Assembly: GCA_024679065.1 (NCBI GenBank)
Contig: JAGIQG010000040.1
Coordinates: forward strand, 10,478,001 to 10,542,000
Direction of reading: 5' to 3'
DNA length: 64,000 bases
DNA from: Sphyrna mokarran
Lineage: Eukaryota
Shown: piece by piece, positions 18,638-56,985 of the stretch
Numbering within the stretch: position 1 is the stretch's first letter
Layout of the letters: each line of letters opens with the position of its first letter
Program-made: the position numbers and the translations under genes
The notes under the pieces: generated by a model
Databases searched by the model: none
Told to the model about the DNA's origin: nothing
The model's input: only the letters and a program-made list of their open reading frames with translations

Positions 18638-18769
18638 CTGTCAGGAAGGGAAATACAGAATAAAACTAGATATGATTCAGGCAGATTTTACCATTTAAAA
18701 TGCAGATGGATCAAAATTTTAAAAGAGTTTGCACAAACACTGTATTGAAAAAATCTCCTTTTGATGAAC

Positions 18770-26200: not shown

Positions 26201-26300
26201 NNNNNNNNNNNNNNNNNNNNNNNNNNNNNNNNNNNNNNNNNNNNNNNNNNNNNNNNNNNNNNNNNNNNNNNNNNNNNNNNNNNNNNNNNNNNNNNNNNNN
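26201..26300. other. Assembly gap (100 N; probably an unsized scaffold join)
   Basis: Exactly 100 n characters. Confidence 1.
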
Positions 26301-33075: not shown

Positions 33076-33118
33076 ATGGGAATCCTTCTTGTTTTCACTC
33101 TGTGTGCCTGTTTACCCC
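33076..33118 (+). CDS. Leader exon of the NAR-type V segment
   Basis: ATG at 33076, hydrophobic MGILLVFTLCACLP, phase-1 donor c|gtgagt. 148-nt intron to the V exon. Confidence 0.92.
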
Positions 33119-33266
33119 GTGAGTATCGATCAAACTAACCCACATTGTGTGGATTGGATATAAAGCTGTCCCAGCCCATCCCAATTACAGACACTGTTTG
33201 GGGTTTTAGCCCCGTTGTGTGGTTCGGATCTGATGGTCCATTAAACTCTCTGTGTTTAATTTCCAG

Positions 33267-33556
33267 GATCTTTCAGCCAGTCGGTGGTACAGAGCCCAGA
33301 AGCGGTGACCAAGAAGGAGTGTCAGTCTCTCACCATCAACTGTGTTTTCTATGGCGGATTCTTTGCTCGCCCTTTGGTTAACGGCGAGTTCTTCAAACAA
33401 ACCCAGCCCGGGAAGGAGTGGGAGCCGATCCCCAGCGGAGGGAGATTTATTGTTTCTGTGAACGAAGCAGGAAAGACATTTTCGCTGGAAATTCGGGATG
33501 TGAGAGTTGAAGACGCCGCCACCTATTACTGTAAAGCTCATTATAAATACAAGACA
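33267..33556 (+). CDS. NAR-type (IgNAR-like) V segment of a NAR-TCR chain
   Basis: Acceptor ttccag|, in frame with the leader: SFSQSVVQSPEAVTKKECQSLTINCVF...PSGGRFIVSVNEAGKTFSLEIRDVRVEDAATYYCK. Short FR2/CDR2 typical of VNAR. Extra FR1 Cys. Followed by an RSS. Confidence 0.93.
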
Positions 33557-33595
33557 CACAGTGATGGGCCTCGGCTTCCCGCGATACAAAAAACT
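33557..33595 (+). other. 23-type RSS of the NAR V
   Basis: CACAGTG (33557-33563), 22/23-nt spacer, ACAAAAAAC/CAAAAAACT (33586-33595). Confidence 0.93.
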
Positions 33596-33956
33596 CTCGC
33601 TGCAGATTCTCACAGAACCAAAGCAAAAACCGGAGTTTATCTACCCTGAACAATCCCCCCACCCCCCACTACCCCTCCCACCTGCCAATTCCCACAATTG
33701 TACCTCACACTCTCGGTGCCACAGTTTATTTTTAATAAGACCTGATTATCACCGTTGACATGTTGAGTTTTATAAATACGGAGTGTGAGTGGATGGGGCT
33801 GTCATTCCCGGGAGTGCTGTCGGTGAATTGAGAATGGAAATGACTGATCCCAGTTACAAACCCTGACCCCAGATGGGATCCTCGGCTCACAGCCGGAACT
33901 GGGAGCCACTTTCCGCGCTGTTTAATTCATGTTCCAACATCCCACCCAGTCCCCGA

Positions 33957-34028
33957 GGTTTTGATGCTGAATTGTAACACTGTGGAACTATTGGGACCAT
34001 CACGATGGAAAGAAGCTGAACAAATACC
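33957..34028 (+). other. D segment (33985-34000, GAACTATTGGGACCAT) flanked by 12/12 RSSs
   Basis: 5' side: GGTTTTGAT-12-CACTGTG (33957-33984). 3' side: CACGATG-12-ACAAATACC (34001-34028). Confidence 0.92.
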
Positions 34029-34339
34029 TGTACATAATTAAACATAAGTGCTCAGTACCCAGAGAGTGAATCATTGGTTTGATGATATTATCGCTGTGAT
34101 CGGGATTATTTCTAATGTAATCTCCACCATTCACATCTTTCCTTGATTTTTTTTGCTATATATAAAGTGAATATTTCCTTCCTGCGGCCATTTACTTAGA
34201 GCTAAGGCCTCAGAAAATTACAATTTGAACCGACAGAGACGTTAAAACCTTGAATATTATTTATTGATTTTAAATCCCCCGAATAATTGGACACTTCCGA
34301 ATGTGTGGTGATGGTTTTCCGGCAGATTGAGATATCGGT

Positions 34340-34436
34340 GGTTTTTGTACCGGGGAAATTGAAGGCGGAGTCACTGTGTATGAATGGAAAAATGCTGATG
34401 CGGATGGACCCGGGACGGTGGTGACTGTCACAGCCG
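34340..34436 (+). CDS. NAR-type J segment (coding 34379-34436) with 23-RSS
   Basis: Consensus GGTTTTTGT-23-CACTGTG (34340-34378). Encodes YEWKNADADGPGTVVTVTA. Phase-1 donor g|gtatgt. Confidence 0.93.
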
Positions 34437-35170
34437 GTATGTGACTACAAATCCCCTCTTGTTACAGTCTGTCTCGTTTAATGCCCCCCTTAACTTTATC
34501 ATTGTGATCGGTCTCGTTACAATCCCATCCAATCTTCCTGTGGAAAATCATCTCTAACAGATTACGAGTTGAGAGCAGGGTGGGATTCTGGAACCGGCTC
34601 CATTTCAGTCTCGGGGAAAGTCTGTTTGAGAGCTGATGGAGTCGGCGGTCAGTGGGATAGGGATAGTGGGACAAGACTTCGAGGGGAGAGGGGTGCGGGG
34701 GCGGAGTGGCTTCAGGGGAGAGGGTGGTGAGGCACGGGGTGGGGGTGCCAGTGTTAGGTGTAATATGGGAGTTGAGAATCTGGATGATTATCGGTTTAAG
34801 GGGCATCTAGAACTCTGACACCTCTGACAGCTTTTAACACACTCAACACTCGGGAATCCACTCTGGATGTTAACTGTGACTGAGGGAGATCTGGCTGTCG
34901 CTTCCAGCCCGATAACAGGAGCACAAAGCTCTCTCTCCTGGGCAGTAGATTACAGTCCTAGCCCTGGAATGTCAAGGAAATACCGGCTGACTGAGATCAG
35001 TGTCACTGCGGCCGGTTTATTTAACCGCAGCGACTCATTCAATACCTGAACCAGGAGACAAAAAAAGGAAAATGACACAACGGACCACAGGTGGGAATGA
35101 ACTGATTGTTGGCCCGGAGGAAAGTTGTAACAGAGAAATCAATGACTGAATTTACTGACATTTGTATAAA

Positions 35171-36177
35171 ATTAATCGACAGGGAGAGATAGGTCGGATT
35201 ATCTCTGGAGAATGCTAAAAATATAATTATCACGATTTGATAATGAGACTTGTGGAAGTTCGGAGTGAAATGGACTCCTGTGGGGAATACTGTGTAAAAT
35301 TTGGTCTTCTTTGTTATAGAAAGGTCTACATACATTGGAGGGAATTTACATTGCCTCCGTTTAATTTTGTTTTCTTATTTCCCACCGCTAGTGGTTAGTT
35401 CTGGAGCATAGATCTTCAGTAATTTTGCCAGGATATTTTCAGGGTCCATAGATTTTGCAGAATTCAGTACCTTCAGCCGGTGCTGAGTTTTGTGAATTAA
35501 TTAAACTGGATAAAGACTAACATCACTGATGTTGGGGATCTCTGGAGGAATTCCAGATGGATCATCCAAAGGATTCCTGTGGAGGAAGAATATTGGCACT
35601 GATGTAGCTTTATCTTCAGCAGACTGACAACTCACTTATAGGGATACGGCTGGGATTGCTCCTGAAGTCTTCATTGAACAAGTGTTACTCTCTTGTTCGC
35701 TAATGTCAATGCAGGGGACATGCTGGGTCATGAGGTTACAGATTATGTCTGAGTACAATTTTGCTATGCATGGCCCACAGTGCCTCAGGTTGCCAAGCAT
35801 CATGTTGCTAAATCTGCTGGAAATCTGATCTGAAGGCGATGCCACACTACAAGATGGAGTGTAGATCAATGTGAAGTTAGGACTGAGAGAGGGGGATGAG
35901 GTGGAAGTCGTTGAGGGAGAACAGGAGAATAGCAAAGAATTGTGAAGAGAATTTCTTTGAACAAGCAATACATGATTAATCGACAGGGAGTGACAGACTG
36001 GATTATCTCTGGAGAATGCTAAAAATATAATTATCGCGATTTCATAATGAGACTTGTGGAAGTTCGGAGTGAAATGGACTCCTGTCGGGAATACTGTGTA
36101 AAATTTGGTCTTCTTTGTTATACATACATACATACATATATATACATATCTACATACATTGAAGGGAATTTACATTG
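35171..36177. repeat. ~180-bp direct duplication (35171-35353 and 35975-36177)
   Basis: Both copies read attaatcgacagggag...gagacttgtggaagttcggagtgaaatggactcctg...ggaatttacattg. Confidence 0.9.
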
Positions 36178-36815
36178 TCTTTTGTGAAGAGATTGAAGAC
36201 CCAGATTTTAATTTGAGGTTAGAGGAATTAGGAGTGATCTCATTAGAATTTATCACATTCTCAAAGGACTGGACAAAGCAAATTTTAGGTGTTTGTTTTT
36301 TTTTCCTAGGCGGGTGAGTCTATAACTTGAGGTCACATTTTCAGATTAACAGTTCAGTCAGTTGGATTAAGAAGAGGAGAAATTTCTTCAGTCAAAGCCA
36401 TTGTGGTGAATCTGAGAATTCTGTACAGCAAAGAGCAGTGGTAGTCAGTGTTAAACACATTCAAGGCAGCGTTTGTGATATATCTGTACCGTGAAATAGT
36501 CAGGGGGAATGGGTCAACGCAGGAATTTCTTGTTGAGGCAGAAGATAAACTGCAACATTACTGATCGATGGCGCAGCTTTGAAATGTGAAACGGCCGCTC
36601 TTGCTTCTATTAGTTGGAAATTTTGCTTCGATTTCTGCATTTCTCAAGAAATCAATCCGCAACAATGTCTGGGGTCTCTTTACATCTAGATATTAGAGAA
36701 CAGTGAAGAGGATTCATGGAAATGGTTCATGTAATGAACATGTTAATGAGATGGATGTCACCAAATTATTTATTTTTGGGTGTGTCTGGAGCAAGGGGCT
36801 ATTAATATCTGATAG

Positions 36816-38092
36816 TGTTACAATCCCAGTTGATGTTACTATTGGATGGGAAGCTCCCAGATGAAAATTTGACTGGAAATAATGTAGTGTATTCTCCTGT
36901 TTTAGAACAATGGGGGGAATTGAATAATTGGATGGCCAATTAGATTTTAGTAATAGAAGATAAAAACATTTATCAATCATGAAAAAGTTTTCTTTGACAC
37001 AATTTACTATGACAGCCCAACTCTTCAAGACTGTACACAGACTTTAAGGATAACACAGATTGCAAAATAAATCTTTGCTATCATGTACCCTGTAAATGCA
37101 ATCCCTGTAAAACAAAAGGTCATTGTCTTCAGCTACACCCCATTCCAATACCCAGTGGTAGATACCATCCAATCAAATTTCTGTGAATTGCTCCTCAAAA
37201 CCCCACAGATCATTAAAAGCTGTGAGCCAACTGGCCTCTCCAGACTCTCACATAGACACGAGTGTTTCCCATTCCCCACGTTTGAAAAGTCATGTCTTTG
37301 GTAAATTCTACCAAATAACTCTTTGCCTGCTCTACTTTCATCAAGGATCCACTTCCAGAATTTCGCATTTTGTTTTCACTATTCCTCTGTCTTGAATTCC
37401 CATATGAATTCAAGTTTCCATACAAGCTCAGAGGTGTGTCGCCATGCCAATACTGCTTCACTGGCCTCACCAATATTATGATTATATCTGAAAGCTGGCT
37501 GGCCAACTTCACCAGGTCTGTGCAGTTCAGCTCTGCATTTAGCTGGGGTCCTTTGTCTCTGCCCCGTCTTCAACTTTGAGAATCAGTACATAGTTCAGTT
37601 TCGAGTTCCTTTGCCCCCCCAACCACCCCCACCCTCTCAGTTCAGTTGTCCTGGAACGTTTTCATTTCAGTTCCTTGGTTTCCAAAACTATGTGTTTTTT
37701 TATTATCTGGGATTTTTTTTTCTTCTTCTCCTTACTCCACTTATTGTTTCTGCTTTGACAGAGCAGGTGTTTTTTGTCTCATTGCGTATCTCCTAAAGCC
37801 TTGGGCCCAGTTAAACGCCTTCCTAATACAAAGGTGGCTCCTGGTTCCCAAGGAACAGCCTATTCCTACTTTACAGCATTTTATTTTTCATGTCATTAAC
37901 TCCCTCGGCATAATACAGACACCGTTTAAAATGAACGAAAAACCCGAAACACATTTGTTTGATATCAAGCTAACTAGAGTTTTACCCTAACTTATACAGA
38001 AACACTAAACTAAACTCAATTAAATCTATACCTCATTTCTAATATTCAATAATACAATCACAGATTGCAGAAACCACCTCTGCCTCCTGACA
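36816..38092. mobile_element. Solo LTR (or short LTR element) with 4-bp target-site duplication
   Basis: Begins TGTTA (36816) and ends TGACA (38092). Flanked by ATAG on both sides (36812-36815 and 38093-38096). Confidence 0.65.
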
Positions 38093-39099
38093 ATAGTGAT
38101 TCAGAGAAAATCTAAATATCAAGAAGCAAAATTTAAAGTATCAGCCAGGATGTGAAACTCACTGTCATTTTGAATGTTTGGAGCAGCAGGTACTGATACA
38201 TCTATAGGAAAACTTGAAAATATCAGAGGGAGAAGAGATCAGACTGACACAGGGAGCTGGATGGGAAAGATCAATTAGAAAACGGCGGGTTGAGGTTGGT
38301 CTGGAATATTTACACAGACATATCTGTGTAGGTCGAATTGTCTCTTCTTCTGCTGCTGTCCTATAAAAATTATAACTTATAGGAAACTCTGCCCAGAGAC
38401 GCAGGGAAAGAGTCAGTTAATGAGCAGAAAAAAATGAAATAGTCAGAGATCCAGTGAGTCACAGTAAAACCACTGCGGAAACTGAACAGAATGAACACAA
38501 CTGACAACAAGTATGAAATTTTCGGGCATGTTTCCACAACACAAAAAACGCAAACAACAAAAAGTAAATGAAATGCATCTGATTAGAGATTTCAATGTAA
38601 AGTGAAGGAGGGAAAACAATAGACTGACAGAAAATAAATAAATAGATTTAAAAGAAAGGCTTCCAGAAAGTGTTAAATTCAATTAAATGTCTGTACATTT
38701 GGCCACCGTTGTTCGGCATGTTTCTGCCCTGTTGAAGCTGATTAATCACAATCATTTTTGTTGGATCTTGCTGTGCATTGTGATGTGAGCAGTTGGGTTA
38801 CGCTTTGACAAGCATTTCTAGAAATGGATTGCGTCACTGATAATAAAATATTCCCTCAGTTTGTGTCCCAACATGGAACTGGAAGCTGAAATCGAGTATA
38901 TATGGTAGAATCATTTAGCATGGAAGGGTGACATTCGGCCCCTCGGGTAGATGCTGTCCCTTTATAAATGAAATCTAATTCTTCCACAAGCTATGAATAT
39001 TCCTGATAAACCTGTTGTTTTCCTGTTCATGTATGTGATCATTCCTCATTCATAATTGACTGTTAAACCAGCTCTTACTAAGCTGACAGTGTGTTCATA

Positions 39100-39575
39100 A
39101 ATTCACAGAATTTACAGCAAAAAAACAGGCCCTTCTTTCCAAACTGATCCGTGTGCCGATCAAAATGCCCATCTAAGCTCAACCATTCGCCTGCTTTTGG
39201 CCCATACCCTTCTAAAACTTTTCCCTCCATGTGTCAGTCCAAATGTCTTTTAAATGTTGTCAATGTCTATGCCTCAACCACTTCCTCCGGCAGCTCATTA
39301 TACGTATCACCCTTTGTGTAAAAAAAGTTTTCTTCCCTGCAGAGTCCCGTTAATTCCTTCTTGTTCTCGATTCTCAACCCTGGGAATAAAATTGAGTTCA
39401 TTCGCTCTATCAGTGCCTCTTATGATCTTGTACTCTTTTACAAGCTCACCTGTCTGTCTCCTATGCACCAAAGGAAAAAGTCCAATCTCTGCCTGTAACT
39501 CAGTCCCTTGAATCCTGACAACATCCTTGTTAATCTCTTCTGCAATCTCTCCAGTTTAATAACATCGTTACAGAT
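39100..39575 (-). mobile_element. Degraded CR1 LINE 3' fragment
   Basis: KLERLQKRLTRMLSGFKGLSY (ORF 39438 -) and CR1-type 3' UTR. Confidence 0.7.
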
Positions 39576-39775
39576 CATTTGTGCATTTGTGTTTGTTTGC
39601 GCAAAATAGAATATCATCTCATTGTACACTGGTTTATAGAGTAAATGAATCTCGTTCCATTGGAATTAAAATAATAACGACACCGCACAAAACTGAGCTA
39701 CTCCCGCAACTGTCACAATCCCTGGGTAAAAAGTGGTAAGGCCTTAAAAAAAAGTGTTTTTTTTTAATCTGGCAG

Positions 39776-40080
39776 ATTCCCTGGTATCCAAGAATCCGCC
39801 TCTCCAAATCTCTGCTGCCGATGACACGGTTACTTTAAGCTGTGAATATTCAGGAATCTGTCAGTACACAGTGTACTGGTACAGTCAGTCCCCAGGACAG
39901 GGTCTGAAATACTTGCTTCAGAAAGACACTTCCGGACGGAACAATAAAGAAAACGCTGCCGGAGAGAGAATTTCTGCTTCTATCGATTCTGTCGAGAAAA
40001 TCAGCCGGTTAAAGATCTCCGAACTGCAACTAAACGACTCGGCTACCTATTACTGCGGACTGAGTCGGCACAGCCTGAAC
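39776..40080 (+). CDS. Leaderless supporting TCR-delta-type V segment
   Basis: Acceptor ggcag|, phase 1, in frame with the upstream J: DSLVSKNPPLQISAADDTVTLSCEYSGICQYTVYWYSQSPGQGLKYLL...LQLNDSATYYCGLS. Canonical C, W and YYC plus an extra CDR1 Cys. No leader exon seen upstream. Confidence 0.93.
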
Positions 40081-40119
40081 CACGGTAGTTGAATCTCCCT
40101 TAACACCCGTACAATAACC
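40081..40119 (+). other. 23-RSS of the supporting V
   Basis: CACGGTA (40081-40087), 23-nt spacer, ACAATAACC (40111-40119). Confidence 0.85.
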
Positions 40120-40346
40120 TCCCAGCATCACGGGAGAAAACCAAGCTCTCTAAATAACACCCTCCCAACACCACTCCCACCACCATCTTCCATCTCCACC
40201 GAGTGTACACAATTATTTATCCCCCACCCTCTTCCCCCGTTCCCCACCCCACCCCATCCACCCATTCCCGGTGCTGGGACACGGCAGAAGGACAGAGAGA
40301 GGTGGACAAGATCACAACAGATCTGGTTATGGAATCAAACAGCGTG

Positions 40347-40407
40347 TAACATGGAGAGACTAGAAAGCTCATCTTTGGCAATGGAAGCAGGCTGATTGTG
40401 GAACCCA
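40347..40407 (+). CDS. TCR-delta-type J segment 1
   Basis: HGETRKLIFGNGSRLIVEP with phase-1 donor a|gtaagt. Heptamer CAGCGTG (40340-40346), 12-nt spacer, weak nonamer AGATCTGGT (40319-40327). Confidence 0.9.
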
Positions 40408-40515
40408 GTAAGTAACTAATCCTGGATAATGATTACTCAACATGTTAGTTCCCCTCCGTGACTTCATGGAGCCATACAGTCACTGCGTTATTTCAATTAA
40501 CACTATTTTTATATG

Positions 40516-43500
40516 GAACATAGAACATAGAACATAGAACATTACAGCGCAGAACAGGCCCTTCGGCCTTCGATATTGCGCCGACCAATTAGGAAAAAGC
40601 AATGACCCTCTAACCTAAACCATTCCCTTTTCGTCCATAAACTTATCTACTAACCTCTTAAACGCCACCAAAATTGGCGCATCTACAACTGCAGCAGGCA
40701 GGGCATTCCATACCCTTACCACCCTCTGGGTAAAGAACCTACCTCTGACATCTGTCCTATAACTACCACCCCTTATTTTAAAGCTATGTCCCCTCGTGCT
40801 AGCTTTCTCCATCCGAGGAAAAAGGCTATCACTGTCCACCCTATCTAAACCTCTAATCATCTTATATGTTTCAATAAGGTCTCCTCTTAGCCGCCTTCTT
40901 TCTAACGAAAACAACCTCAAATCCCTCAGCCTTTCTTCATAAGACCTGCCCTCCATACCAGGCAACATCCTGGTAAACCTCCTCTGTCCCCTCTCCAATG
41001 CCTCCACATCTTTCTTATAATGCGGGGACCAGAACTGCACACAATACTCCAAGTGCGGCCGCGCTAGAGTTTTGTACAGTTGCAACATGACGTTGCGGCT
41101 CCGAAATTCAATCCTCCTACCAATAAAAGCTAAGACTCCATATGCCTTCTTAACAACCTCATCGACTTGATTGCCAACTTTCACGGATCTATGCACATAT
41201 ACACCAAGATCCTTCTGTTCTTCAACGCTATTAAGAGTTCTACCATTAGCCCTATACTCTACACATTTGTTATTCCTGCCGAAGTGAATTACCTCACACT
41301 TTTCCGCATTGAACTCCATTTGCCACCTCTCGGCCCAGCTCTGCAACTTGTCCAAGTCTCTGTGCAAACTATAACACTCCGCTTCACTATCTACCACTCC
41401 TCCGACTTTGGTGTCGTCCGCAAATTTACTAATCCATCCTTCAATACCCTCATCCAGATCATTTATAAAGATTACAAACAGCAGGGGTCCCAAAACAGAT
41501 CCCTGAGGTAATCGAACTCCACAATGAATAATTTCCATCAACCACCACCCTCTGTCATCTATCAGCTAGCCAATTCCTAATCCAATTGGCTAAATCACCC
41601 TCCATACATCTGCATTTTCTGCAGAAGCCTTCCATGGGACACCTTATCGAACGCCTTACTAAAGTCCATATATACCACATCAACTGCCTTACCCCCATCC
41701 ACCTCTTTGGTCACTTTTTCAAAAAACTCAATAAGGTTAGTAAGGCACGACCTACCCTTCACAAAACTATGCTGACTATTCCCAATCAATTCATTTCCCT
41801 CTAAATAACTATAAATCCTATCCCTAATAATTCTTTCCAATATTTTGCCCACAACAGAAGTAAGACTCACCGGTCTATAATTCCCAGGAAAGTCCCTATT
41901 TCCCTTCTTGAACAATGGGACCACATTCGCTATCCTCCAGTCTTCCGGCACAATACCAGTAACCAACGACGACCTGAAGATCAGAGCCAGAGGTTCTGCA
42001 ATTGCCTCTCTCGCCTCCCAGAGAATCTTAGGGTAAATCCGTCCGGCCCAGGGGGCTTATCTAACTTCAAACCCTCAAGAATATCTAGCACATCCTCCTT
42101 ATCTACTTCAATACTTTGAAGTTTACAACCCTGTATCCCAGTGTTCTCCACTACTAGATTTGCATCTCCCTGCGTGAATACCGAAGAGAAATATTGGTTC
42201 AGTGCCTCTCTAATCTCTTCAGGCTCCACGCACAACTTCCCACTGCTGTCTCTGACTGGCCCTAATCTTGCCCTAACCAATTTTCTATTCTTAACATATC
42301 TAAAGAAAGCTTTAGGATTCTTCTTGATCCTATCAGCCAAAGTCTTCTCGTGTCCCCTTTTAGCTCTTCTCAACTCACTCTTCAGCTCCCTCCTGGCTAA
42401 TCTATAGCTATCCAGTGCACTAACTGAGCCTTCAAGCCTCATCCTGACATAAGCCTCCTTTTTCCTTTTAACCAGCGAATTAACTTTTTTAGTACACCAT
42501 GGTTCCCTTACTCGACCATTTCCTCCTTGCCTGACAGGGACATACTTATCAAGGACTCGCAGCAGCTGCTCCTCGAATAAGCTCCACATTTCAGATGTTC
42601 CCAGTCCCTGTAGTTTCCTAGTCCAATCTATGCACCCTAATTCTCTCCTTATGGCCTCATAATTACCATTCCCCCAGCTATAACTACTGCCCCCAGCTTC
42701 ATGCCTATCCCTATCCATCACTAAGGTGAACGTAACCGAATTGTGGTCACTATCACCAAAATGTTCACCAACTTCCAAGCCTAACACCTTGTCTGGCTCA
42801 TTGCCCAGCACCAAATCCAATGTAGCCTCACCTCCAGTTGGCTATCTACATACTGAGTCAAAAAACCTTCCTGCACACTTTGTACAAAAACTGACCCCTC
42901 TAACGAGCTAGAGCTATAGCTATTCCAATCAATATTAGTAAAGTTAAAGTCCCCATAACAATTACCCTATTACTTTCATTCCTGTCCAGAATCGACTTTG
43001 CAATCCTTTCCTCTACCTCTCTAGAACTTTTAGGAGGTCTATAAAAGACTCCCAACAGGGTGACCTCTCTTCTTCTGTTTCTAATCTCAGCCCATACTAC
43101 CTCAACAGACAAGTCCTCATCAAACTCCCTTTCTGTCACTGTGATACAGTCTTTGACTAATAATGCCACTCCTCCCCCCCTTCTACCTCCTTCTCTACTC
43201 TGACTGAAGCATTTGAACCCCGGAACCTGCAACAACCATTCCTGTCCTTGCTCTATCCATGTCTCTGAAATGGCCACAACATCGAAGTTCCAGGTACTGA
43301 TCCAAGCTGCAAGTTCCTCCACCTTATTGCGAATACTTCTTGCATTAAAGTATGCGCATTTCAAACCATGCTCTACTCCACCCGTACGCTGCTGTGCTTT
43401 ACAGTTCTCATTTATGACCCCCCCATTCTCGTCCCTCTTAACATCCAAGCTACTCAGGATCCCACCCTCCCTCTGAATCAGTTTAAACCCCCCTGCATAG

Positions 43501-44470
43501 CCTTTGCAAATTTTCCCTCCAAGATATTGGTTCCCCTCTGGTTCGGTTGTAGACCATCTCTCTTGTAGAGGTCCCACCTACCCCAGAATGAGCCCCAATT
43601 GTTCAAGAACCTGAACCCCTCCCTCCTGCACCATCCCCTCAGCCACGAGTTCAAACATTCCCTCTCTCTGTTCTTCTCTAAACTATCCCGTGGCACAGGC
43701 GAGAGTCCAGAGATAACCACTCTGTCGGTTTTGGCCCTAAGCTTCCACCCCAACTCCATAAATTTCTGTTTAATATCCCCTTCCCTTGTCCTACCTACAT
43801 CATGTGTCCCTACATGAACTATGACTTGGGGCTGACTCCCCTCTCCCTTAAGAATCTTGAAAACCCGCTCTGAGACGTCCTGGACCCCGGCCCCTGGTAG
43901 GCGACACACCAGCCCTGAGTCCCGTTTATTACTATTTACTCTTCTATCTGTCCCCCTAACTATGGAGTCTCCAATTACCAGGCCCAATCTCTTATTTCCC
44001 CTACCCACCTGAGCCTTCCCAGCAGACTCACCCCCAGAGACCTGCTCTCTTTGGCTATCCGAGTTGATTCTTCCTGAACTGTAGCCTCCAGGACAGAAAA
44101 CTTATTTTGGAGGGGAACAGCCCCAGGGGATTGTCTCCCCGATTGCTTCTTACCCCTCTTCCTAATAGTTACCCAAGAATCTCTTTTAGGAGTGACTATC
44201 TCTTTGTAACTCCTGTCAATATCAGCCTCAACCTCCCGAATTATCCGGAGTTCCTCTAATTCCAGCTCCAGCTCCTTAACATGATCCTCAAGGAGCTGCA
44301 AATGGGCACACTTCCTGCAGGTATGTTCAGCAGGAACACTACTGGTGTCCCTCACCTCGTACATACCGCAGGGGGTGCAACGTACTGCCTGCACTGCCAT
44401 CCCTGATACTTTAATTTCTAGGAGAAAAAAAAACTTCCCACACACGGGGGAAGCACACGGGGAAACGGGT
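40516..44470 (-). mobile_element. Near full-length CR1-clade LINE (ORF1: zinc finger, leucine zipper, SGNH esterase; ORF2: APE endonuclease and RT), frameshifted
   Basis: ORF1 motifs CTPC..CRKC, LELELEEL, GDSIVRG, HVGTHD. APE motifs YFNARS..ISETW..YRPP. RT motifs [21 protein letters not shown]. (gttctat)n tail at 40516-40540. Split over six ORFs. Confidence 0.95.
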
Positions 44471-45744
44471 GAGCAGTTCTCATTGGGAATCCAAAGAACA
44501 GCTTCACTGGGCATTGAGATAGAGCAGATGAGAGCTTTATTTCCACAATTCAAGATTGTTTCCTTAAAACATTTAACTGGCCTTTATCATAAAACCCACC
44601 TGATAGCTGGCAAGGAGATGTATTGATGAAATTGTTGTTTGTAATGCAATTAAATGAGAATGAGAGATAGAGATAGAGAGAGAGAGAGAGACTCCTGCTC
44701 AGCCACGCCTAATATATAACATGGCTTTCTCAAGCTTTCAGCTCTTCACAAAAAAATCTAGCGTCTTCGTCCAAAAATAGCTATCACTGAAAGCAGAGCA
44801 ATTCTTTCACTGGGCGAAGCGAGGCAATTTGGTTTTTAATTTGTGCTTGGCTGTGCGTATATTTGAAGGATTTTATAAGATCCATTGTCCCTCTCTTGGT
44901 GGTAGATAATTTTTAAGGTTTACTATTCGCATACGATGGCAGTTGTCGAAGCTCCCACTCACATTTATGAACATGCCAGTATCCTTATTTTCAATATTGG
45001 TTGGAATCTGAATAAGTTGCTGCGCTTGTAGATTTCTGCTGGTAACTGTTCACAGTGCTCATTACTATGTCGGTACTTAGAAACTCAACTTTGGGTGCGG
45101 GAACTAACTGAATGTTGTACCAATTAGATGCCAGCTGATTTATCTTTACCCTTCGATGGACATTTCTGGTAAACCCGTGTCTGGCGAATGGTGACAAAAA
45201 GCGAAGGCAATGCTTAAAATTAAAAGCAAACCGTTAGATGGATTAATGCATCATTAGATATTTAATTAGAACGGTAGAGATCCAAAGAATATAAATCAGT
45301 AAATTCGTAGATATCACACAAATTGGTGTTGTGATGAGTAGCGAGGAGGAAAACCTTACATTATAGATCGATATAGAAAGTTTGGTTAAATGGACAGAGA
45401 AGTAGAAAATTGAAAGTGAACCTTTAAAAGTGTAATGTGGTGCATTTTGGCAGGACTAACAGGGCAAGGATATATACAGAAATTAATGAAAACTGCATGG
45501 AAGGGAAGTTAAACTGCTGGCTATGTCTTCAACTTTTTTGAAACAGAGAAAAAACAAATAAAACAAAATACCTAAATGGGGATGGGTTTCAGGGAAATGA
45601 ATAGTTGCATTTCTTCTTTGGAGATCACCTGGCATTATAATTTGAATCCTAATCTATGGTCAAATCACCAAGCAGGTCAAAAACAACCTCTTGCATTACT
45701 GTCAGCACGGGACTAATAGATTTGTGTAGCGTCTGTTATGATTG

Positions 45745-46390
45745 CTCAGACATTGAATACAAGAGTTAGGGCGTTTTGTTGAAGTTGTACAAGGCATTGG
45801 TAAGTTCACACTTGGAATATTGTGTACAATTCTGGTCACCCTATTATCGAAAGGATATAATTAAACGAGAAAGAGTGCAGAAAAGGTTTACTAGGATGTT
45901 ACCGGGACACATGAAGGTTTAAGGCTGGATAGAGCGGGACTGTTTTCTATGGAGTGTACAAGGCTGAGGGCGGTCTTATAGAAGTCCGTAAAATAATGAG
46001 GGACTCAGATCAGCGAGATAGTCAATACATTTTCCCAAAGGTAGGAGAGTCTAAATCTCGGGGTGGAAGGCTGGGCAGGGGAAGGGTGAGGGGGGACATA
46101 ATTTACGGGTAGAGTGGAAAGACACAGAAGTGTCCAGAGAGGCATTTTTTATATATACAGAAGGTGCTGAATGTAACAACTTGCCAGAGGTAGTAGCAGA
46201 GGCGGGTACAATTTTATCTTTTAGAAAGCATTTGGACAGTTACATTGGGTAAGGTGGGTATACAGGGAAATGGGGCAAGTGTGGGCAATTGGGTTTAGCT
46301 TATGGGTTTAAAAAGAAAGTCTGTATGAACAAGTTAGGCCGAAGGGCCTGCTTCCATGCTGTAAATCTCTATGATTCCTTGACTCTATGA
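45745..46390 (+). mobile_element. Degraded CR1 LINE 3' fragment
   Basis: cacttggaatattgtgtacaattctggtcaccc (HLEYCVQFWSP) and ctctatga tail. Confidence 0.8.
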
Positions 46391-48800: not shown

Positions 48801-49915
48801 CTCAGTATTTTTCTCTATAGCCCTTTACGAGTGTTGTCTTTGGTTTCTCTGCCTATCATGTTTTTAATCCCTTTTCGACCCCTTTTTTTATACTTGTTCC
48901 CTCCTTCCCTGACTCCTTACATAAGTTCCCAACCACCTGGCATATTAGTTTCTTTGCGTGACCTTGTAGTATTGTGAGGTGGTGAAACTGAAAGGAGGCA
49001 ATGCCCCAGTGGTGTTATCCTAGATTATTAATCCGGGAAATCAATCAGTGTTCTGGGGACCCTGCGTTCGAATCCTACCATGGCAGATGGTGGAATTCAA
49101 ATTTAATAATCTGGAATTAAGAATCTACTGCTGACGATGAAAGCAACTGTTGGAAAATCACATCTGGTTTAGGAATGTCCTTTACAGAAAGAAATCTGCC
49201 ATTCTGATCTGACCTGGCCTATATGTGCAATTTGGATGACTCTCAAGGGCAGTTGGGAATGGATAATAAATTCTGGCCAGACAATGGTGCCCATGTCCCA
49301 CGACCAAATAAACATCTCTCTCTCTTTGAAAATAAGTCCGAGTAACTGTTGATGCAACTAAATGTAAACGCATCTTTCAGACTCAACATGTCTGCTTACC
49401 TCTTCGGAATCTAACAGGATTATGAAAATAAGAACAGATAATACTGGTTAAAACCCCAGCAGGTCCGGAAACATCTCAAAGGAGAGAAAGCTTAGCTAAC
49501 AAATTAAGTATTATTCATTGAATTGTATTTATTTTCTACCAGATGTTGAGGCACCACTGGCAAGACCATGTTGCAAATTGCTGTTAAGCCATTTCAGAGA
49601 TTGGCAGAGCAGGAGCGAAGAGCTGAATGGCCTTCCCTTGTTCCCATGGTTCCTAACAAAAGTTCAGAGGCAAAATATCTCTGTTGCAGGGGGAGGACAT
49701 GGATTGCTTTATTTGACCAGTGGCTACCCTGGCTCAGAAATTCTTCACATTGGTAGAATCCTAGAGCATCCAAGGAGGCCTTTCGGCCCACTTAGCCTGT
49801 GATGGTGGGAAGGGATAAGATATGCAATATCTGTTATCTGCAGCGAATCAGTGACTGTTCCAACTTTATCTTTGCCGTGAATTGTCTGAAATCTGAAACA
49901 GCTATCACAATAGAA

Positions 49916-49993
49916 GGTTTCTGTCTGAGCAATTGTTTCTGTGATATGAAAAGCTGACGTTCAGCAGCGGCACCCAGGTGACAGTTATACCAA
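49916..49993 (+). CDS. TCR-delta-type J segment 2 (coding 49944-49993) with 12-RSS; non-canonical FSSG motif
   Basis: GGTTTCTGT-12-TTCTGTG (49916-49943). Encodes YEKLTFSSGTQVTVIP. Phase-1 donor a|gtgagt. Confidence 0.88.
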
Positions 49994-50399
49994 GTGAGTG
50001 TGAAGTCAGTGTGTTTTTATTCTTTCACTCCACATCTCCTCTGTGATCTAGTTTTCTGTTGTAAGTAGTCTAGTCAAGTTGGGCAGAGTGCCAACATGAC
50101 ATGTGGCATGCAGGCGAGGAGATTGGTTAGTTTTGAGTCAGTTTTGATCTAGCTCAGTTTACCCAGGCATTAGAGGCACATTGGAAAGGAGTTGGGACTG
50201 CACGCCTCAGTAATATGGTATTGAACTGAGAAACAGATTTGTGTCGTGTGAACGGGATAGGAAGATTCCATTCAGAGAGTTGATTTAAATGAGAGAGGGG
50301 AGACGAATAAGCATCATTGTTCTGTTTAAACCGTTGTAATTGTGAATTACACAGGATTTTCATTCTCTTGGCGAAAAATAAACTCTCCTCATATCAGTC

Positions 50400-51150
50400 C
50401 CATACTACTTGAATATGAACCCTGGTTCTGGACCCTGCCTCCACTCTGCATCTACCCTGTCTAATCCTGCATTATATGTTTTAGTGACATCTTCTCCTCC
50501 TGCCTTCCTTCTTCTGAACCCCAGACAATAAAATCCTAACCGGCTCAATCTCCCCTCATATGTCAGTCCTGCCACTCCAGAATCTGTCTGGTGAACTTCT
50601 CTCCACTCCCTCTTTAGCATCAACTGCACTGCACTAGTCTACCTTTTTGGCTATCCCTTCAAAAATTCATTCAAATTTATGAGATACGATTTTCCACTCA
50701 CAAAGCCATGCTGAATGTCCCTAATCAGTCCTTGCATCTCTAAATGACTGTAAATCCTGTCTCTCAAAATATATTTCAACAATTTACCCACCACAGATGT
50801 GAGGCTCACTGGCCTGTAGTTTCCAGGCTTTTCCCTGCAGCCCCTTTTAAACAAAGACACAACATTTGCCACTTTCCAATCTTCAGGCACCTCACCTGAG
50901 TCTAACGATGATTTAAATATCTCTGCTAGGGAACCCGCAAATTTCTCCCTCGCCTCCCATAATATCCTGGGATACACCTCATTAATTTTCGGGGATTCAT
51001 CGATCTCAATGCGCTGTTAGACTTCCAGCACCTCTTTCTCTGTTATATGTACACTCCCAAAGACATCACTATTTTTTCCCCAAGTTCCCTAACAACGATG
51101 CTTTTGTTAACAGTGAATACTGGTGAGAAATATTCAATTAGGATCTCACC
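50400..51150 (-). mobile_element. CR1 LINE ORF2 fragments
   Basis: GEVPEDWKVANVV...PGNYRPVSLTSVVGK (ORF 50651 -). Confidence 0.88.
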
Positions 51151-51152
51151 CG

Positions 51153-51272
51153 CGTGTGTTCGTGTATGTGTGTGTGTATGTGTCTGTGCATGTATGTGTG
51201 CCTGCTTGTGTGCACAGGCATGTGCGCACTGTGTGTGTGTCTGTGTGTGTGTGTGTGTCTGTGTGTGTGTGT

Positions 51273-51317
<45 letters not shown>
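51153..51317. repeat. (TG)n/(GA)n microsatellite
   Basis: Direct inspection. Confidence 0.95.
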
Positions 51318-51497
51318 GGCGTTTTCTGTGCCAGGGGAAAAGGATTATTTATCCAGTCTCAGCATTCGGTAAGTTAATGGAGAAACTTACATAGGGTTAA
51401 GACACAGGAAAAATGTGGTCTAATCGAATGGCACAGCAGGTTGGGGGATGTCACCCTGTTGGATTCTGATTTTTTTTCCTTTTATTTTCATTTTTAG

Positions 51498-51800
51498 AGG
51501 CGAAAGGCCCGGAAGAACCAAAATTGAGCGTCTTTTACCCGCCAGTGCCACCGGGAGCCACCAACACCAGCACCGCTGCAGTCTGCTTGGCCTCGGACTT
51601 CTCCCCCAAGGCAATCCAGCTCTCCCTGTACACGGGATCCGGCCAGGAGGTCAATGTGACAAGATCCAGTGTCCCATTGGAGAGCGGGAATTACAGGAGC
51701 TCGGGTTTCCTCTCTTTCCCCCAATCCGGGAAATCACCAAACATCACGTGCAAGGCATTTCACAATAATCAGATTTACTCAGTAAACATCCCGCCCACTG
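51498..51800 (+). CDS. TCR-delta-like constant (C1-set) domain exon
   Basis: Acceptor tttttag|, phase 1: AKGPEEPKLSVFYPP...TAAVCLASDFSPKAIQLSL...NITCKAFHNN. Donor g|gtaagt at 51800/51801. N-glycosylation sequons NTS, NVT and NIT. Confidence 0.92.
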
Positions 51801-52451
51801 GTAAGTTTATTTTAGTTCCGTTCATGTGATGTGGTTTGACCAGCATTTATTGCCCATCCTAAATTGCCCTTCAGCAGAGGGCATTTAAGATTCACTTACC
51901 GGCCAGACAGTGTAAGAACGGCAGATTTCCTTCCCTAAAGGATATTAGTGAACCAGATGAGTTTTAATGATAATCGACAATAATTCCGTTGGTCATCATT
52001 AGACTTCTAATTCTATTTCTTTAACATTCAAATTTCGCATCTGTCATGGTGAATTTCGAACACACATCCCCATATCGGTATTCTGTGTCCTTGGATTGAC
52101 AATATCACTGCGCAACTGCCTCCTCTGAGAGTGTTTTTGGATAGGAAGAACGTCCATTAAATATTATCCATCCTTTTAACACTCTCGGTGTCATCGTCCC
52201 TCAGAATGTTGTCTTTTAAGGTCAGATGTTGGGATGTTCGTTGATAACTGAACAATGTTCAGCACCATTCATGATCCCTCAGATCATGAAGTAATGCATT
52301 ACAAATGCAGCAATAGCTGGACAATATCTAGGCTTAAACTGACAAGCTGCAAATAACATTTGCACCGCCCATGTTCCAGACAATGTTCAACTCCAACAGG
52401 AAAGAAGGCAACAATCGGCTCTTGTCATTTAATGGCATTACCATGACTGAA

Positions 52452-53050
52452 ACAAAGAACAAAGCAAATGACAGCACAGGAACAGGCCCTTTGGCCTTCC
52501 AAGCCTGCATTGGATATGCTTCCCAGCTTAACTAAAACCCCTTACACTTCCGGGGACCATAACCCTCTATTCCCATCCTATTCATGTATTTGCCAAGATG
52601 CCCTTAGAACTCACTACCGTATCCGCTTCCACTACCACTCCGGGTAACAAAATCCATGCACCCTCCACCCTCTGTGTAAAAAATCTGCCTCACGCATCTT
52701 CAAACCTTGCCCCTCGCACCTTAAACATATTGGTGCTAACAAATTGTCCCTAAATGAGACCTCCCTCAATCTGGCACACATAAAAATTCTCTAAATTTGT
52801 ACACCTTTTTTGTTGCGTCCAAGAGGCGTGGGCAAAAATCATAGGTAGAAGAAAGATTGGAATGAGGCGCCCACTGAATGTTAAAATGGCGGTGCGGGCT
52901 TGGTGGGCCGAAGGGCCTGTTTCCTGTGCTGTGTTGTTCTTTGTTCTTTGTATATGATCACTAGTAATTGAATTTTCCACTCTGGGGAAAAAAAAACTTC
53001 TAACTATCCCATCAGTACATGCCTCTCACAGTCTTGTAGACTTCTAAATG
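52452..53050. mobile_element. CR1-type LINE 3' ends (two opposed fragments)
   Basis: aacaaagaacaaag...ggaacaggcccttt at 52452 and ggccgaagggcctgtttcctgtgctg...ttctttgttctttg at ~52905-52950. Confidence 0.7.
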
Positions 53051-53324
53051 GTCAACGCCCACTATTTGCATCCTGAGGATTAACGTTGCTCAGAAACTGA
53101 ACTGGATTATCCGTATAAGTCTCTGACTGCAAGAGGATGTCGGAGATTGGGAATCCTGTGCTGAATAAGGTTCCTTGTAATCTCCCAAATCCTCTGCACC
53201 ATCCACAAGACATAATGATGACTGTGGTAGTGTATTAACCACTTGCCTGGATGAATGTAGCTCCAGCAATAGATAGAAATTTGACACAACCCAGAACATA
53301 GCAGCTCCGCTTGATTAAAAGTCT

Positions 53325-53575
53325 ATTTATTAGTGTCACAAGTCGCTTTACATTAAACCTGCGATGAAATTACTGTGAAAATTCTCTAAATGCTATCCTG
53401 TGCGCCTGTTCGGGGAAGCTGAGGGAGAATTTAGCATGGTCCATGCATCTTATCAGCACGTCTTTCAGACTATGGGAGGAAACCGGAGCACCCGGATCAA
53501 ACCCACGCTGACACGGGGAAACATGCAGACTCTGCACAGTCAACCAAGCTGGGAATCGAACCCAGGTCCTTGACG
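53325..53575 (-). mobile_element. HE1-like SINE
   Basis: gggaggaaaccggagcacccgg core and gggaatcgaacccagg B box. Confidence 0.8.
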
Positions 53576-54539
53576 CTATTGGTGGACTGGAGGGAAGGTG
53601 GGAGAGGTGGGGGTAGGGATGGAACAGTACTAACCATTGTGTTGCTCCAGCATTAAGTGCTCCATTCTCAGACATCCACTCTTTTTCTACTACCGAATCA
53701 CAGTGGTAGCAGTGTGTGCCATTCACCAGATACACAGCAGTCATTCCCCAAGTCTCATTCCGCTGAATTTTCCAAACACATGGCCGTTATCATCTCGCAG
53801 GACAAGGGCAGTAGATACCTGGGAACACCATTATCACTCAATATCCTGACTTGGAAATATTTCGGCAGTTCCTTCATTGTCTCTCGGTTAAAATGGTGGA
53901 ACTTCTTCCTTAAGAGCATTGTGTGTGTATGTACATCTCACAGACTCCTGAGATTCAAGCAGGAGACTCACAACCATCTTCTGAAGGGGGCAATTAGGGA
54001 TTGGCAGTAAATGCTGACATGCCAGTGAAGTTCACACCGTAAATGAGTAAAAAATAATAAGAGCGAACCATTATAGTTCAGGGCAGTGTCCAGGACCCGC
54101 AGCTGCTGGTGTATCACCGAATTTAGGAAAGTATTAAATACTAACCAGGGTACTGGAGAATCCCGCTCCTCTGGAGAAATGTCCTGAAATCATTAATCCA
54201 CTGCAGAGCTGAAATCAGACCTCGGTTTCACCACTTCTTCGGAAGACAGTGAAATACCGCCCCGATGGAATGGTCTGGATTCTGGGGTTTAATCCCTGAT
54301 GGGTAATCGAACCTACACTCTTTGAACTCAGATTTGGGCCGAACTAAATGGCAGAGTTACCAATGTTTCTCCGTTTTGAATAATCAAGTGAATAACTCCA
54401 ATCGTGCTGTTTGATTCTCACTTTCTTCGTGGCTATTGGTTATAACAACAACATTATTGGAAATGATATTGAGAACAAACATGGTCACAGTAATGTCACT
54501 TGTTCACTGAATAAGTCAGTTTGTTTTGTGTCCTTCCAG

Positions 54540-54587
54540 ATCAAACTAAATGCCTTAAAAATGGATATGATTCCTCAACAGAAAACG
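54540..54587 (+). CDS. Connecting-peptide exon of the TCR-delta-like C region (interchain Cys)
   Basis: Acceptor ccttccag|, encodes DQTKCLKNGYDSSTEN, donor g|gtatgt. 48 nt, phase 1-1. Confidence 0.88.
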
Positions 54588-54805
54588 GTATGTGTTTTAT
54601 TCAACATTTATCAATGGAAAATACTGCAAATAGACCGATTGATAATTGAGAGATAGGCAGGGGTACAGACCCGGATATCGCATGATAAAGAGAAAGAGAG
54701 ATGGAGAGAAAGATAGATCGTCACACAGAGTGAGGGAGAGAGAGGTATAAATCGAGGAATGGGGTGTATGGAGTGGAGGTGGGGGGCAAGAAAGAGTGAG
54801 GGGGG

Positions 54806-54869
54806 GAGAGAGAGAGAGAGAGGGAGAGAGAGAGAAAGAGAGAGAGAGAGAGGGAGAGAGAGAGAGAGA
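54806..54869. repeat. (GA)n microsatellite
   Basis: Direct inspection. Confidence 0.95.
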
Positions 54870-55076
54870 TTCAGAGTGAAAGACAGATGAAGATAGGTCG
54901 ACAGCAGGCACGTAGGCGGGCTGGTGGACAGACGGGCGGACAGGATGGACAGACAGACGAAAGTCAAGCAGTTAGATAATGGAAAAGAAACACATTAATG
55001 TTATACATTTCTTTTCCAGTTCCAAGTGATATATGTACCAAACCAGATCTATCATTTGTTTCTCTCATTTTGGCAG

Positions 55077-55186
55077 ATCGACTGAGGGCGAACTTTTTGT
55101 CTTTGATGGTGATGGGGCTAAGAATTTTGTTTCTCAAGAGCATTGTCTTCAGTGTCCTGATGACGGCCAGGGTGTGGTTATTTTGA
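55077..55186 (+). CDS. Transmembrane/cytoplasmic exon of the TCR-delta-like chain
   Basis: Acceptor tggcag|, encodes DRLRANFLSLMVMGLRILFLKSIVFSVLMTARVWLF*. The intramembrane R and K at i and i+5 are diagnostic of TCR alpha/delta chains. Donor 1 nt after the stop. Confidence 0.95.
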
Positions 55187-55684
55187 GGTAAGATCGGTCA
55201 CCTAAATGCCTGCCCAGAAAGACAAAGTGTCATGGACACAGTCCATTGACGGGATCTCGGGAGGTCACTGTTAAGGCAGCGCTGAAGCTAACCCGTGGAG
55301 TGAACAGTAACTTGGATACATTTAGACAAACGGACTCTTCCCCTAGTGCCCCATCCTCATCGCTTTTCATCCCGTCAACCCCCGCCCCCAATCGCAACCT
55401 TAACTTCTTAAACCTCTCCAGAGTTGTGTTTAATTATGGGTGTCACTGATAGACCAGCCTTTTACACCCATCATCTGGTCTTGCGCTGTGTGGCACTTTC
55501 AGAGAGTCGGTGCAGACTCTGTGGGCCAAATCGCATCCTTCTGCACTATCGGGATTTTTGTGCACTTGCATTGGCTTCTGAGAATATTAATGGAGCAGGT
55601 TAATGGAGACTTTAAAGATAAAACGTGTTCTTTTTTTGCTGATCTTTGATGTTCTCCCATTGTCGTTCCTTTCATTCCAAACAG

Positions 55685-56985
55685 AACTGCGTTGGAAGAT
55701 TAAATGGATTCAGATATGAACTCATTGACTGGAACATCAAAATCCAGACACTTCCTGATCATAGATTCCACTTCAAGCAATTCAAACTCGCTTGTTTTAA
55801 ATGGCAGCTTAACTTTTAAACATCCTCATTCGGGTAACATTTTTCCACTGTTATTTTGATTTGAAACTTGTGCTTCTGCATGAATTCTACTGCTTATGCG
55901 ACACAAACATTTCAATTATGCATTTCAGCAACAGCGTGGATCTCACATTTATATGGTTTCTGCCTACATTAGTGTCGGAGACATTTTTGAAAGCAGCATT
56001 TTCAATTTTAGGACACATAGAACTTCGATTTTTATATTCTTTGCTTAGAATAGTAGAATTCTATTACAGAAAAAAAACAGCCACTCAGCCCATAGTGACA
56101 GTCCCAGCATCTTCACAGGGCAATCTAGCTAATGACACCTCAGCTTTCCCTTTTGGCTGTTTTATTCTGGTAGTTATTGTAAACGTTGCATTTTTATTCC
56201 ATATAATTTAAGAGCGTAAGATATATTTAATCAGCAAGGGTCTGATCGGATTTTCATCAAACTCAATAACTCAGTAGTTAGATTTGAATGGTGAGGAGGG
56301 AGGCTGGTTTTAAAATGCCCCCTAGCTGATCCACTCAGTTTTAATCAGTCTCTGTTTTTTTTAGTATTTCAAGAGCTAGTGAAGGAAAGGGTGAGTTTGA
56401 CAGCCTGGAGTTACTTCTCTGAATCAAAGGAATTCAATCAGAGCGAATATCAGGCGGTTAGTGGGATGCCACCCGCTTTTAGATTGTAGCCAAGGTGATA
56501 TTCTCACTTCCGTACTGAATCTTGGAATCCAGATTTTCCTCCCAGTGCCACGGAGGCACCAAACCCCAGGCTGTACATCCGGCTCCTCAGAGGTAATCGA
56601 GCCCCCCTCTCCCACTGTGCAGAGCTTCATCATTACACGGCATCTCACAAATAAGATGAGCAAGAGTTTTTAAATATCTCGCCATTCGCTTAGCCTAAAA
56701 TCAGGTTATTGCGCTCAGGTTATTTCACAGATGGGACATTCAGACACATTTAAGACCGTCTGGTTAATCAGGGGAAGAGAGAGCACTGGGGAGAAGGTGG
56801 TAAAGTGGAGTTGGGGATGATATTAAATCAGCCATGATTTCATTGAACGGCGAAGCAGAGCCGATGGGCTGAATGGTCCACTTCAGCTGCTTCGCCTTAT
56901 GCTCTTCTGGTTCGTTAATCACACTTTTGTTCATATCTGTAACCTTGTTCTTTTATCATGTGCATTGTTATTAATATTGAATAAA
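55685..56985 (+). other. Probable untranslated last exon with polyadenylation signal
   Basis: Pyrimidine-rich acceptor ...ttccaaacag| at 55684 and AATAAA at 56980-56985. A separate 3' UTR exon is standard for TCR alpha/delta C genes. Confidence 0.6.

Follow-up and report, generated by a model that had tools for sequence, protein, structure and literature searches.

A 24-kb NAR-TCR unit with its own J segments and TCR-delta-type constant gene in Sphyrna mokarran, probably one of a multi-copy family of clusters

The NAR-type T-cell receptor (TCR), called NAR-TCR or NAR-TcR, was reportedly presented as a receptor of cartilaginous fish by Criscitiello et al. 2006; a gene unit of this type, 24 kb long, lies at positions 33076 to 56985 on the forward strand of the stretch of Sphyrna mokarran DNA analysed here (64,000 nucleotides of contig JAGIQG010000040.1, assembly GCA_024679065.1, positions 10,478,001 to 10,542,000; hereafter the window). 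In the excerpts from which the literature is cited throughout, NAR-TcR is described in PMC1845163, PMC5931798, PMC2275272 and PMC3149040; it uses the TRD constant region and is placed in the TCR-delta locus (PMC5931798, PMC3149040, PMC6795676, PMC12227049), and the TCR genes of sharks are given as translocons (PMC6795676, PMC12227049). The TCR-mu (TRM) clusters of marsupials and monotremes are repeated and comprise an unpaired N-terminal V-D-J, a second, supporting V, and a delta-derived constant gene of their own; the second V rearranges without a D in the platypus and is germline-joined in marsupials (PMC3457774, PMC7615758, PMC2275272). The immunoglobulin (Ig) miniclusters of sharks (IgM, IgW, IgNAR) are V-D-J-C units of ~20 kb (PMC2191167, PMC12227049), and galliform birds and the duck have a second TCR-delta locus, which is a VH-delta-D-J-C-delta cluster (PMC5278385, PMC3457774). 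Clusters are regarded as characteristic of the antibodies of sharks and, within the TCRs, of TCR-mu in mammals; NAR-TCR clusters that carry a C of their own are not described in the literature searched, beyond which lie the primary papers on the nurse shark locus and all supplements.

The unit in the window carries, in this order, a leader, a NAR-type V, a D, a NAR-J, a leaderless supporting V-delta, J1, a J pseudogene, J2, a constant (C) exon, a connecting-peptide (CP) exon, and a transmembrane (TM) exon. We consider it probable that it is a complete germline NAR-TCR minicluster and one of a multi-copy family, in which every copy is equipped with J segments and a TCR-delta constant gene of its own. 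With NAR-TcR it shares the leader-bearing NAR V, the D and J belonging to this V, a J spliced to a leaderless supporting V-delta, the delta-type C, and the need for two V(D)J joins; it differs from NAR-TCR as described in having J segments and a C-delta to itself and in being repeated many times, and it is not seen embedded in an alpha/delta translocon with shared D-delta, J-delta and C-delta. With TCR-mu it shares the arrangement of V-D-J, second V without D, and own C in clusters, found both in the layout of the window and in its repeated paralogues; unlike in TCR-mu, the N-terminal V is NAR-type and not VH-related, the C is nearest to copies in Mustelus asterias and to shark delta chains, and, unlike in marsupial TCR-mu, the supporting V still needs V-J joining. 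Like the shark Ig miniclusters, of which the 24-kb window unit has approximately the size, the family would consist of many dispersed, self-contained V-(D)-J-C units arising by en-bloc duplication; unlike them, its C is a TCR-delta C with a TM exon and a CD3-assembly motif, and there are two V domains per unit. As in birds, an extra C-delta with its own J and an antibody-like V occurs outside the main alpha/delta D-J-C region; unlike in birds, which have just one extra locus and a single V domain in each chain, the copies here are many and the chains would be double-V.

The window had previously been interpreted from its letters alone (the sequence-only reading), and the existence of the complete unit, as first observed there, is confirmed: all elements lie on the forward strand where that reading put them, with intact frames and phase-1 splice sites. 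Its further assertion that every element is present once, with intact recombination signal sequences (RSSs), is corrected in two respects: the RSS of J1 is weak, and an extra, dead J at 45058 to 45123 had been overlooked. The notion of a cluster-type locus with its own J and its own C is borne out, as the unit has J1, J2 and a TCR-delta-type C, which may be dedicated to the local V segments. The notion of a single, separate second locus like galliform TCR-delta 2 is abandoned here in favour of one copy of a repeated cluster family, and the proposed shark counterpart of TCR-mu is retained as a likeness of architecture by convergence and not as homology, given the NAR-type V and a C nearest to shark C-delta. 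The features of the unit are as follows.

33076 to 33118 (+): leader exon (MGILLVFTLCACLP plus 1 nt), 43 nt, phase 1, GTGAGT donor, GT at 33119
33267 to 33556 (+): NAR-type V exon, intact, after an AG acceptor; Pfam V-set, E 6e-8
33557 to 33595 (+): RSS of the NAR V, CACAGTG, 22/23-bp spacer, ACAAAAAAC; from the consensus scan
33957 to 33984 (+): 5' 12-RSS of D (GGTTTTGAT-12-CACTGTG); from the consensus scan
33985 to 34000 (+): D segment, 16 nt; from a D scan of the whole window
34001 to 34028 (+): 3' 12-RSS of D (CACGATG-12-ACAAATACC); from the consensus scan
34340 to 34378 (+): 23-RSS of NAR-J (GGTTTTTGT-23-CACTGTG), 0 mismatches to consensus
34379 to 34436 (+): NAR-J (YEWKNADADGPGTVVTVTA), phase 1, GT donor at 34437; tblastn match to Heptranchias P0046
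39776 to 40080 (+): leaderless supporting V-delta, AG acceptor directly before it, phase 1; Pfam V-set, E 6e-14
40081 to 40119 (+): 23-RSS of the supporting V (CACGGTA-23-ACAATAACC), good nonamer at 23 bp
40340 to 40407 (+): J1 (HGETRKLIFGNGSRLIVEP), heptamer CAGCGTG at 40340 to 40346, coding part 40347 to 40407, phase 1, GT at 40408
40615 to 44553 (-): broken non-LTR retrotransposon, an insertion separating J1 from the J pseudogene; Pfam RVT_1, Exo_endo_phos and GDSL on separate fragments of open reading frame (ORF)
45031 to 45123 (+): J pseudogene (KLNFGCGN*LNVVP) with RSS-like flank, segment 45058 to 45123; in-frame stop, no GT donor
49916 to 49993 (+): J2 (YEKLTFSSGTQVTVIP) with 12-RSS (GGTTTCTGT-12-TTCTGTG), coding part 49944 to 49993, phase 1, GTGAGT donor at 49994
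51498 to 51800 (+): C exon, TCR-delta-type C1-set Ig domain with both Cys, 303 nt, phase 1 to phase 1; Pfam C1-set, E 3e-5
54540 to 54587 (+): CP exon (DQTKCLKNGYDSSTEN) with interchain Cys, 48 nt
55077 to 55186 (+): TM exon (…FLSLMVMGLRILFLKSIVFSVLMTARVWLF) with conserved R and K; TGA at 55184 to 55186, then G and a GTAAG donor
55685 to 56985 (+): putative untranslated last exon, predicted from the sequence; AATAAA at 56980 to 56985

The exons were translated and searched individually, one at a time, and an arithmetic check, exon by exon, gives compatible phases throughout. The only runs of N in the window lie at 5620 to 5748 and 26201 to 26300, and the whole 24-kb unit is gap-free. In a scan of both strands of the whole window with up to 3 mismatches, the 23-spacer RSS consensus matches 4 times where 0.94 matches would be expected, a count attained in 2 of 100 shuffles, and the 12-spacer consensus matches 3 times in the window where 0.80 would be expected, a count attained in 5 of 100 shuffles; six of these seven matches lie directly at a coding end predicted for a V, D or J. 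The RSS pattern of the unit thus exceeds chance. The seventh match, an RSS-like site at 26479 to 26517, was rejected, as no coding (J-like) segment adjoins it.

The first V of the unit, besides being leader-bearing, satisfies both hallmarks given for the V of NAR-TcR, a Cys within the a-b loop and a WYRK motif that lacks Trp (excerpt of PMC1845163): the Cys is found in KKECQSL (KKECQSLTINC), and FFKQ (GEFFKQTQPG) replaces WYRQ. Its best matches in the PDB (33269 to 33556) are shark VNAR domains, with E from 3e-17 to 1e-9. The leader is nearly identical to those of the M. asterias models P0006, P0038 and P0042. This V has its own D and its own J with compatible RSSs, in the order V-23, 12-D-12, 23-J; the D at 33985 to 34000 is the sole candidate in the whole window in which both RSSs reach at least 13 of 16 positions. 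Further D candidates, at 26516 and 53924, were rejected for marginal scores in non-coding repeats, and a J-like string at 32840 (DFGVGSSESVITVEP) for wrong spacing and the lack of both RSS and donor. The intron between NAR-J and the supporting V holds two copies of an ORF-bearing repeat (…ITKKTKFYTVFPTGVHFTPNFHKSHY…), at 35039 to 35335 and 35636 to 36133 (-).

The second V (translation CEYSGICQYTVYWY) meets the description of the supporting V-delta of NAR-TcR, which has no leader and a Cys in CDR1, its first complementarity-determining region (excerpt of PMC1845163): the Cys is in CDR1 (SGICQY), and no leader exon was found in the 5.3-kb intron upstream. Its identity amounts to 67% with the corresponding V of P0029, a NAR-TcR-type entry with the layout NAR CDR3-J / supporting V / J / C-delta, and to 77-89% with those of the M. 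asterias models, against just 33-38% with P0008, P0024 and P0045 (ordinary V-delta) and with P0007 (VH-type V). An alternative heptamer for its RSS, CACAGCC at 40069, has a poor nonamer, and CACGGTA at 40081 is preferred. J1 follows ~230 bp beyond the supporting V and has an in-frame TAA at its extreme 5' end; its type recurs in M. asterias models (KLIFGNGTRLIVEP), and the J2 type adjoins C in M. asterias P0041 and P0044. A relaxed D scan of the whole window found no D between the supporting V and the J segments, which leaves direct joining to J1 or J2 as the only route for this V. This differs from P0029, in which the CDR3 of the supporting V is long, with ~17 residues between CALS and KLIF, suggesting the use of a D.

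The constant region is, by its sequence relationships, of TCR-delta type. A search with the C exon among 1.84 billion proteins returned 31 representatives at E up to 1e-3; of 10 matches inspected, the name T cell receptor delta constant is carried by two (Hypanus, Leucoraja), the automatic label T cell receptor alpha chain MC.7.G5-like by three, and Ig heavy chain Mem5-like by one, the remaining four being uncharacterised, hypothetical or unnamed. The relatives of this C include proteins of rays that bear the name TCR delta constant (Hypanus, Leucoraja, Hemitrygon). Against the PDB, the best match of the C exon alone is IgM CH1, and the sole TCR among the 60 matches listed, behind Ig constant domains, is a delta chain (1ypz_E, E 6e-4); a profile of nine sequences that includes the window C places human TCR delta chains first (E 3e-28 to 3e-26), seven of the first 10 distinct PDB sequences being named delta and none of the 60 matches listed being named alpha C. 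In a C-domain tree of 23 rows, none of which was dropped after selection and which includes no alpha, beta or gamma outgroup, the window C is nearest to the M. asterias C copies, at a fork (84/92, 17 rows) that is drawn open; the tree is too short for ordering lineages. The TM exon is 83-86% identical to those of 12 M. asterias models (81% over 31 residues to P0006) and 64-79% identical to those of other elasmobranch delta chains, and it keeps the Arg and Lys that form the CD3-assembly motif of alpha and delta chains. The segment from 55685 to 56985 plausibly holds the last 3' untranslated exon of the unit and its poly(A) site. Long microsatellites of the (TG)n and (GA)n type lie at 51150 to 51330, just 5' of C, and at 54681 to 54882, in the CP-TM intron; the contigs of public runs break there.

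The case for a family comes from M. asterias, in which 13 RefSeq models on 12 contigs, as told apart by their lengths, bear a C that is 80-88% identical to the window C. Six of the 13 (P0003, P0006, P0038, P0042, P0043, P0044) show the succession leader-NAR V-(D)J-supporting V-(J)-C-CP-TM, and their NAR V is 70-80% identical to that of the unit; among the others, P0039 has supporting V-C, P0041 has J-J-C, P0005 and P0040 have an odd V-like exon before J-C, and P0001, P0002 and P0004 are C fragments. Both J types of the window recur among these models. For the pairs P0006/P0038, P0003/P0042 and P0043/P0044, identity reaches 92-99% between the NAR V, 92-96% between the supporting V and 94-99% between the C domains; near-identity in all three domains supports en-bloc duplication of whole clusters. 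The deeper relationships of V and C disagree, which suggests exchange between copies. As similar units recur, NAR-TCR in M. asterias seems to be organised as antibody-like clusters and not as one shared locus, judging from layouts which, here and in Heptranchias, come from protein models. A fragment of a retrotransposon reverse transcriptase (RT) has been incorporated into P0003 as a false exon.

No separate, ordinary C-delta was found in Mustelus with a catshark C as query, which returned cluster-type copies only (8 of 13 matches, 56-61% identical; candidates were of 0.55-1.75 times the query length, so that other sizes could be missed); within Mustelus, catshark C-delta has its closest relatives in the cluster C copies. 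In Heptranchias perlo, a single contig bears two C paralogues (P0046, P0010), one of them behind NAR-J-supporting V-J-J. In Cetorhinus maximus, P0012 runs from NAR V-J-supporting V-J1 through three further V segments to a single J-C. Layouts may thus differ between shark orders.

As we envisage its working, RAG would make two independent joins in cis. The first would lead from the NAR V (23-RSS) through D (12/12-RSS) to NAR-J (23-RSS), with the D obligatory because NAR V and NAR-J both carry a 23-RSS (12/23 rule); the second would bring the supporting V (23-RSS) to J1 or J2 (12-RSS) without a D, giving a short CDR3 of low diversity that would fit a structural or scaffold role. Transcription would be driven by a single promoter upstream of the sole leader, and the transcript would be spliced as leader / NAR VDJ / supporting VJ / C / CP / TM / untranslated exon, all junctions being of phase 1. 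The predicted product is a delta chain with three Ig domains, which would be bonded to TCR-gamma through the Cys of CP and assembled with CD3 by means of the Arg and Lys of TM. The 12/23 rule would also allow the NAR V to be joined directly to J1 or J2, which predicts a two-domain NAR V-C chain. The family itself would have grown by en-bloc duplication of whole clusters.

Several observations weigh against the unit being a complete member of such a family. The C-domain tree is poorly resolved, with 10 of its 19 inner branches open. The gene models are computational, and their V-J 'splices' are cryptic sites in germline DNA, which prove neither rearrangement nor transcription. Only ~7 kb are visible downstream of the TM exon. 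The remaining observations on this side equally suit the view that the architecture is real and the window copy a silent or decaying duplicate, with other members of the family active. Runs X16, X1, X2 and X6 contain no splice joint between J2, C, CP and TM over 49900 to 55890, X16 being the sole presumed-RNA run, and small, with no listed run recorded as RNA; its contigs lie on interspersed repeats only, with none on the C, CP or TM exons, so that the runs gave no RNA support. The window copy is the most divergent member of the family, without an exact match among the 13 models, from which it is set apart by identities of 70-80% in the NAR V, 78-89% in the supporting V and 80-86% in C; its CP is shortened, by ~8 residues relative to the M. 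asterias paralogues; the J1 RSS is weak (heptamer CAGCGTG, nonamer matching at 5 of 9 positions); and a retrotransposon and the dead J lie between J1 and J2.

We nevertheless regard a silent or decaying copy as unlikely. All coding exons are open and keep the canonical Cys and the TM Arg and Lys, six of six splice phases fit, the RSS of NAR-J is a perfect consensus, and four others are within 3 mismatches. Contigs of X2, a DNA run with another organism label, cover the region of the C exon and differ from it, over 402 bases, by 4 substitutions and a single 15-base gap, which suggests that a near-identical copy of the C region has been kept in a close relative or another individual. The RNA test, moreover, was nearly empty, consisting of one small run of uncertain kind.

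Much less probable, in our view, is that the unit forms the C-proximal end of a TCR alpha/delta translocon of the ordinary kind, in which the NAR V and supporting V would be the last pair before a shared J-delta and C-delta, with V-delta arrays beyond the gap and J-alpha and C-alpha beyond the window. This would accord with the placing of NAR-TCR in the TCR-delta locus and the naming of shark TCR loci as translocons in the excerpts cited at the outset (PMC5931798, PMC3149040, PMC6795676, PMC12227049), with the Cetorhinus model P0012, which continues from J1 into further V segments before its one J-C, and with a V-alpha/delta-type pseudogene at 6192 to 6477 of the window. The last also qualifies the claim of the sequence-only reading that no other V lies upstream: no live V occurs in the 33 kb upstream, and the dead one had escaped notice. 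On the other hand, D-delta is absent between the V and J segments, and the leader is preceded by ~27 kb of tRNA and receptor DNA without a live V. No J-alpha-like segment was found by motif scan or tblastn in the ~7 kb downstream, a weak test at this length, which agrees with what had been claimed before. The possibility, raised at the same time, that this might be the only C-delta of the genome meets with at least 13 related C models in M. asterias, on 12 contigs, six of them double-V with a private layout, which one shared C-delta cannot explain.

That the repeated clusters are an assembly artefact, either haplotypes of one locus left uncollapsed or its contigs wrongly joined, is highly improbable: although most M. 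asterias models lie on small unplaced contigs (34 kb to 1.8 Mb) and the window has two runs of N, the copies differ by 1-20% in C and up to ~30% in the NAR V at the protein level, with only the closest pairs (~1% in C) in the allelic range, the 24-kb unit is gap-free, and independent contigs of the DNA run X1 cover 30 of 30 bins of 49900 to 55890.

If the unit is indeed one minicluster of a family, a wider proposal can be made tentatively, to which we give somewhat less than an even chance: TCR-delta would have been rebuilt, in houndsharks or perhaps as early as in cow sharks (Heptranchias), from a translocon into dozens of autonomous, doubly rearranging NAR-TCR miniclusters (V-D-J, D-less V-J, own C-delta). 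It would be the first TCR in cluster organisation beyond the mammals, and would have re-invented independently the TCR-mu layout of the platypus. NAR-TCR clusters with a private C-delta would blur the line between translocon TCR and clustered Ig in the oldest jawed vertebrates, and a second independent case of V-D-J / V-J / C would argue for selection of the design. They would also give the transfer of NAR V between TCR and Ig, a matter of long debate, a concrete setting in the genome, and would be the natural origin of a NAR V-D-J cassette that could pass into an Ig cluster to yield IgNAR. Exclusion between clusters, as in Ig, would be needed, and the question would become how one T cell picks among many delta clusters. 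For annotation there is a warning in these genes, whose present labels read 'T cell receptor alpha chain MC.7.G5-like' or 'uncharacterized'.

The ~27 kb upstream of the leader hold tRNA genes, a seven-transmembrane (7TM) receptor ORF and, as the only V, the dead one at 6192 to 6477 (+). This pseudogene has an RSS-like tail, at least 3 stops, and frameshifts, extends over two or three frames, and matches ordinary shark V-delta (best E 3e-6); it is enclosed by inverted repeats at 1 to 634 and 6739 to 7352. The tRNA genes form a dense field between positions 1 and 25000, with 9 genes called by ARAGORN, 7 of them confirmed by Rfam; two 92-nt calls of 'tRNA-Lys(ctt)', at 221 to 312 and 7041 to 7132, are below the Rfam gathering score and unconfirmed. 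Nested inverted duplications bear these tRNAs, pairing 8207 to 8604 with 24307 to 24704 (91%), 1 to 316 with 7037 to 7352 (91%), and 395 to 634 with 6739 to 6978 (96%). Fragments of the same non-LTR family that is inserted in the J region (RT, endonuclease, GDSL-esterase) occur at 1580 to 1942, 3041 to 3394, 10962 to 11303, 25278 to 25769 and 32299 to 32655. Between inverted tRNA segments lies an intact, intronless ORF of 300 residues for a rhodopsin-family receptor, at 17736 to 18638 (-), with a Pfam 7tm_1 match at E 1e-16.

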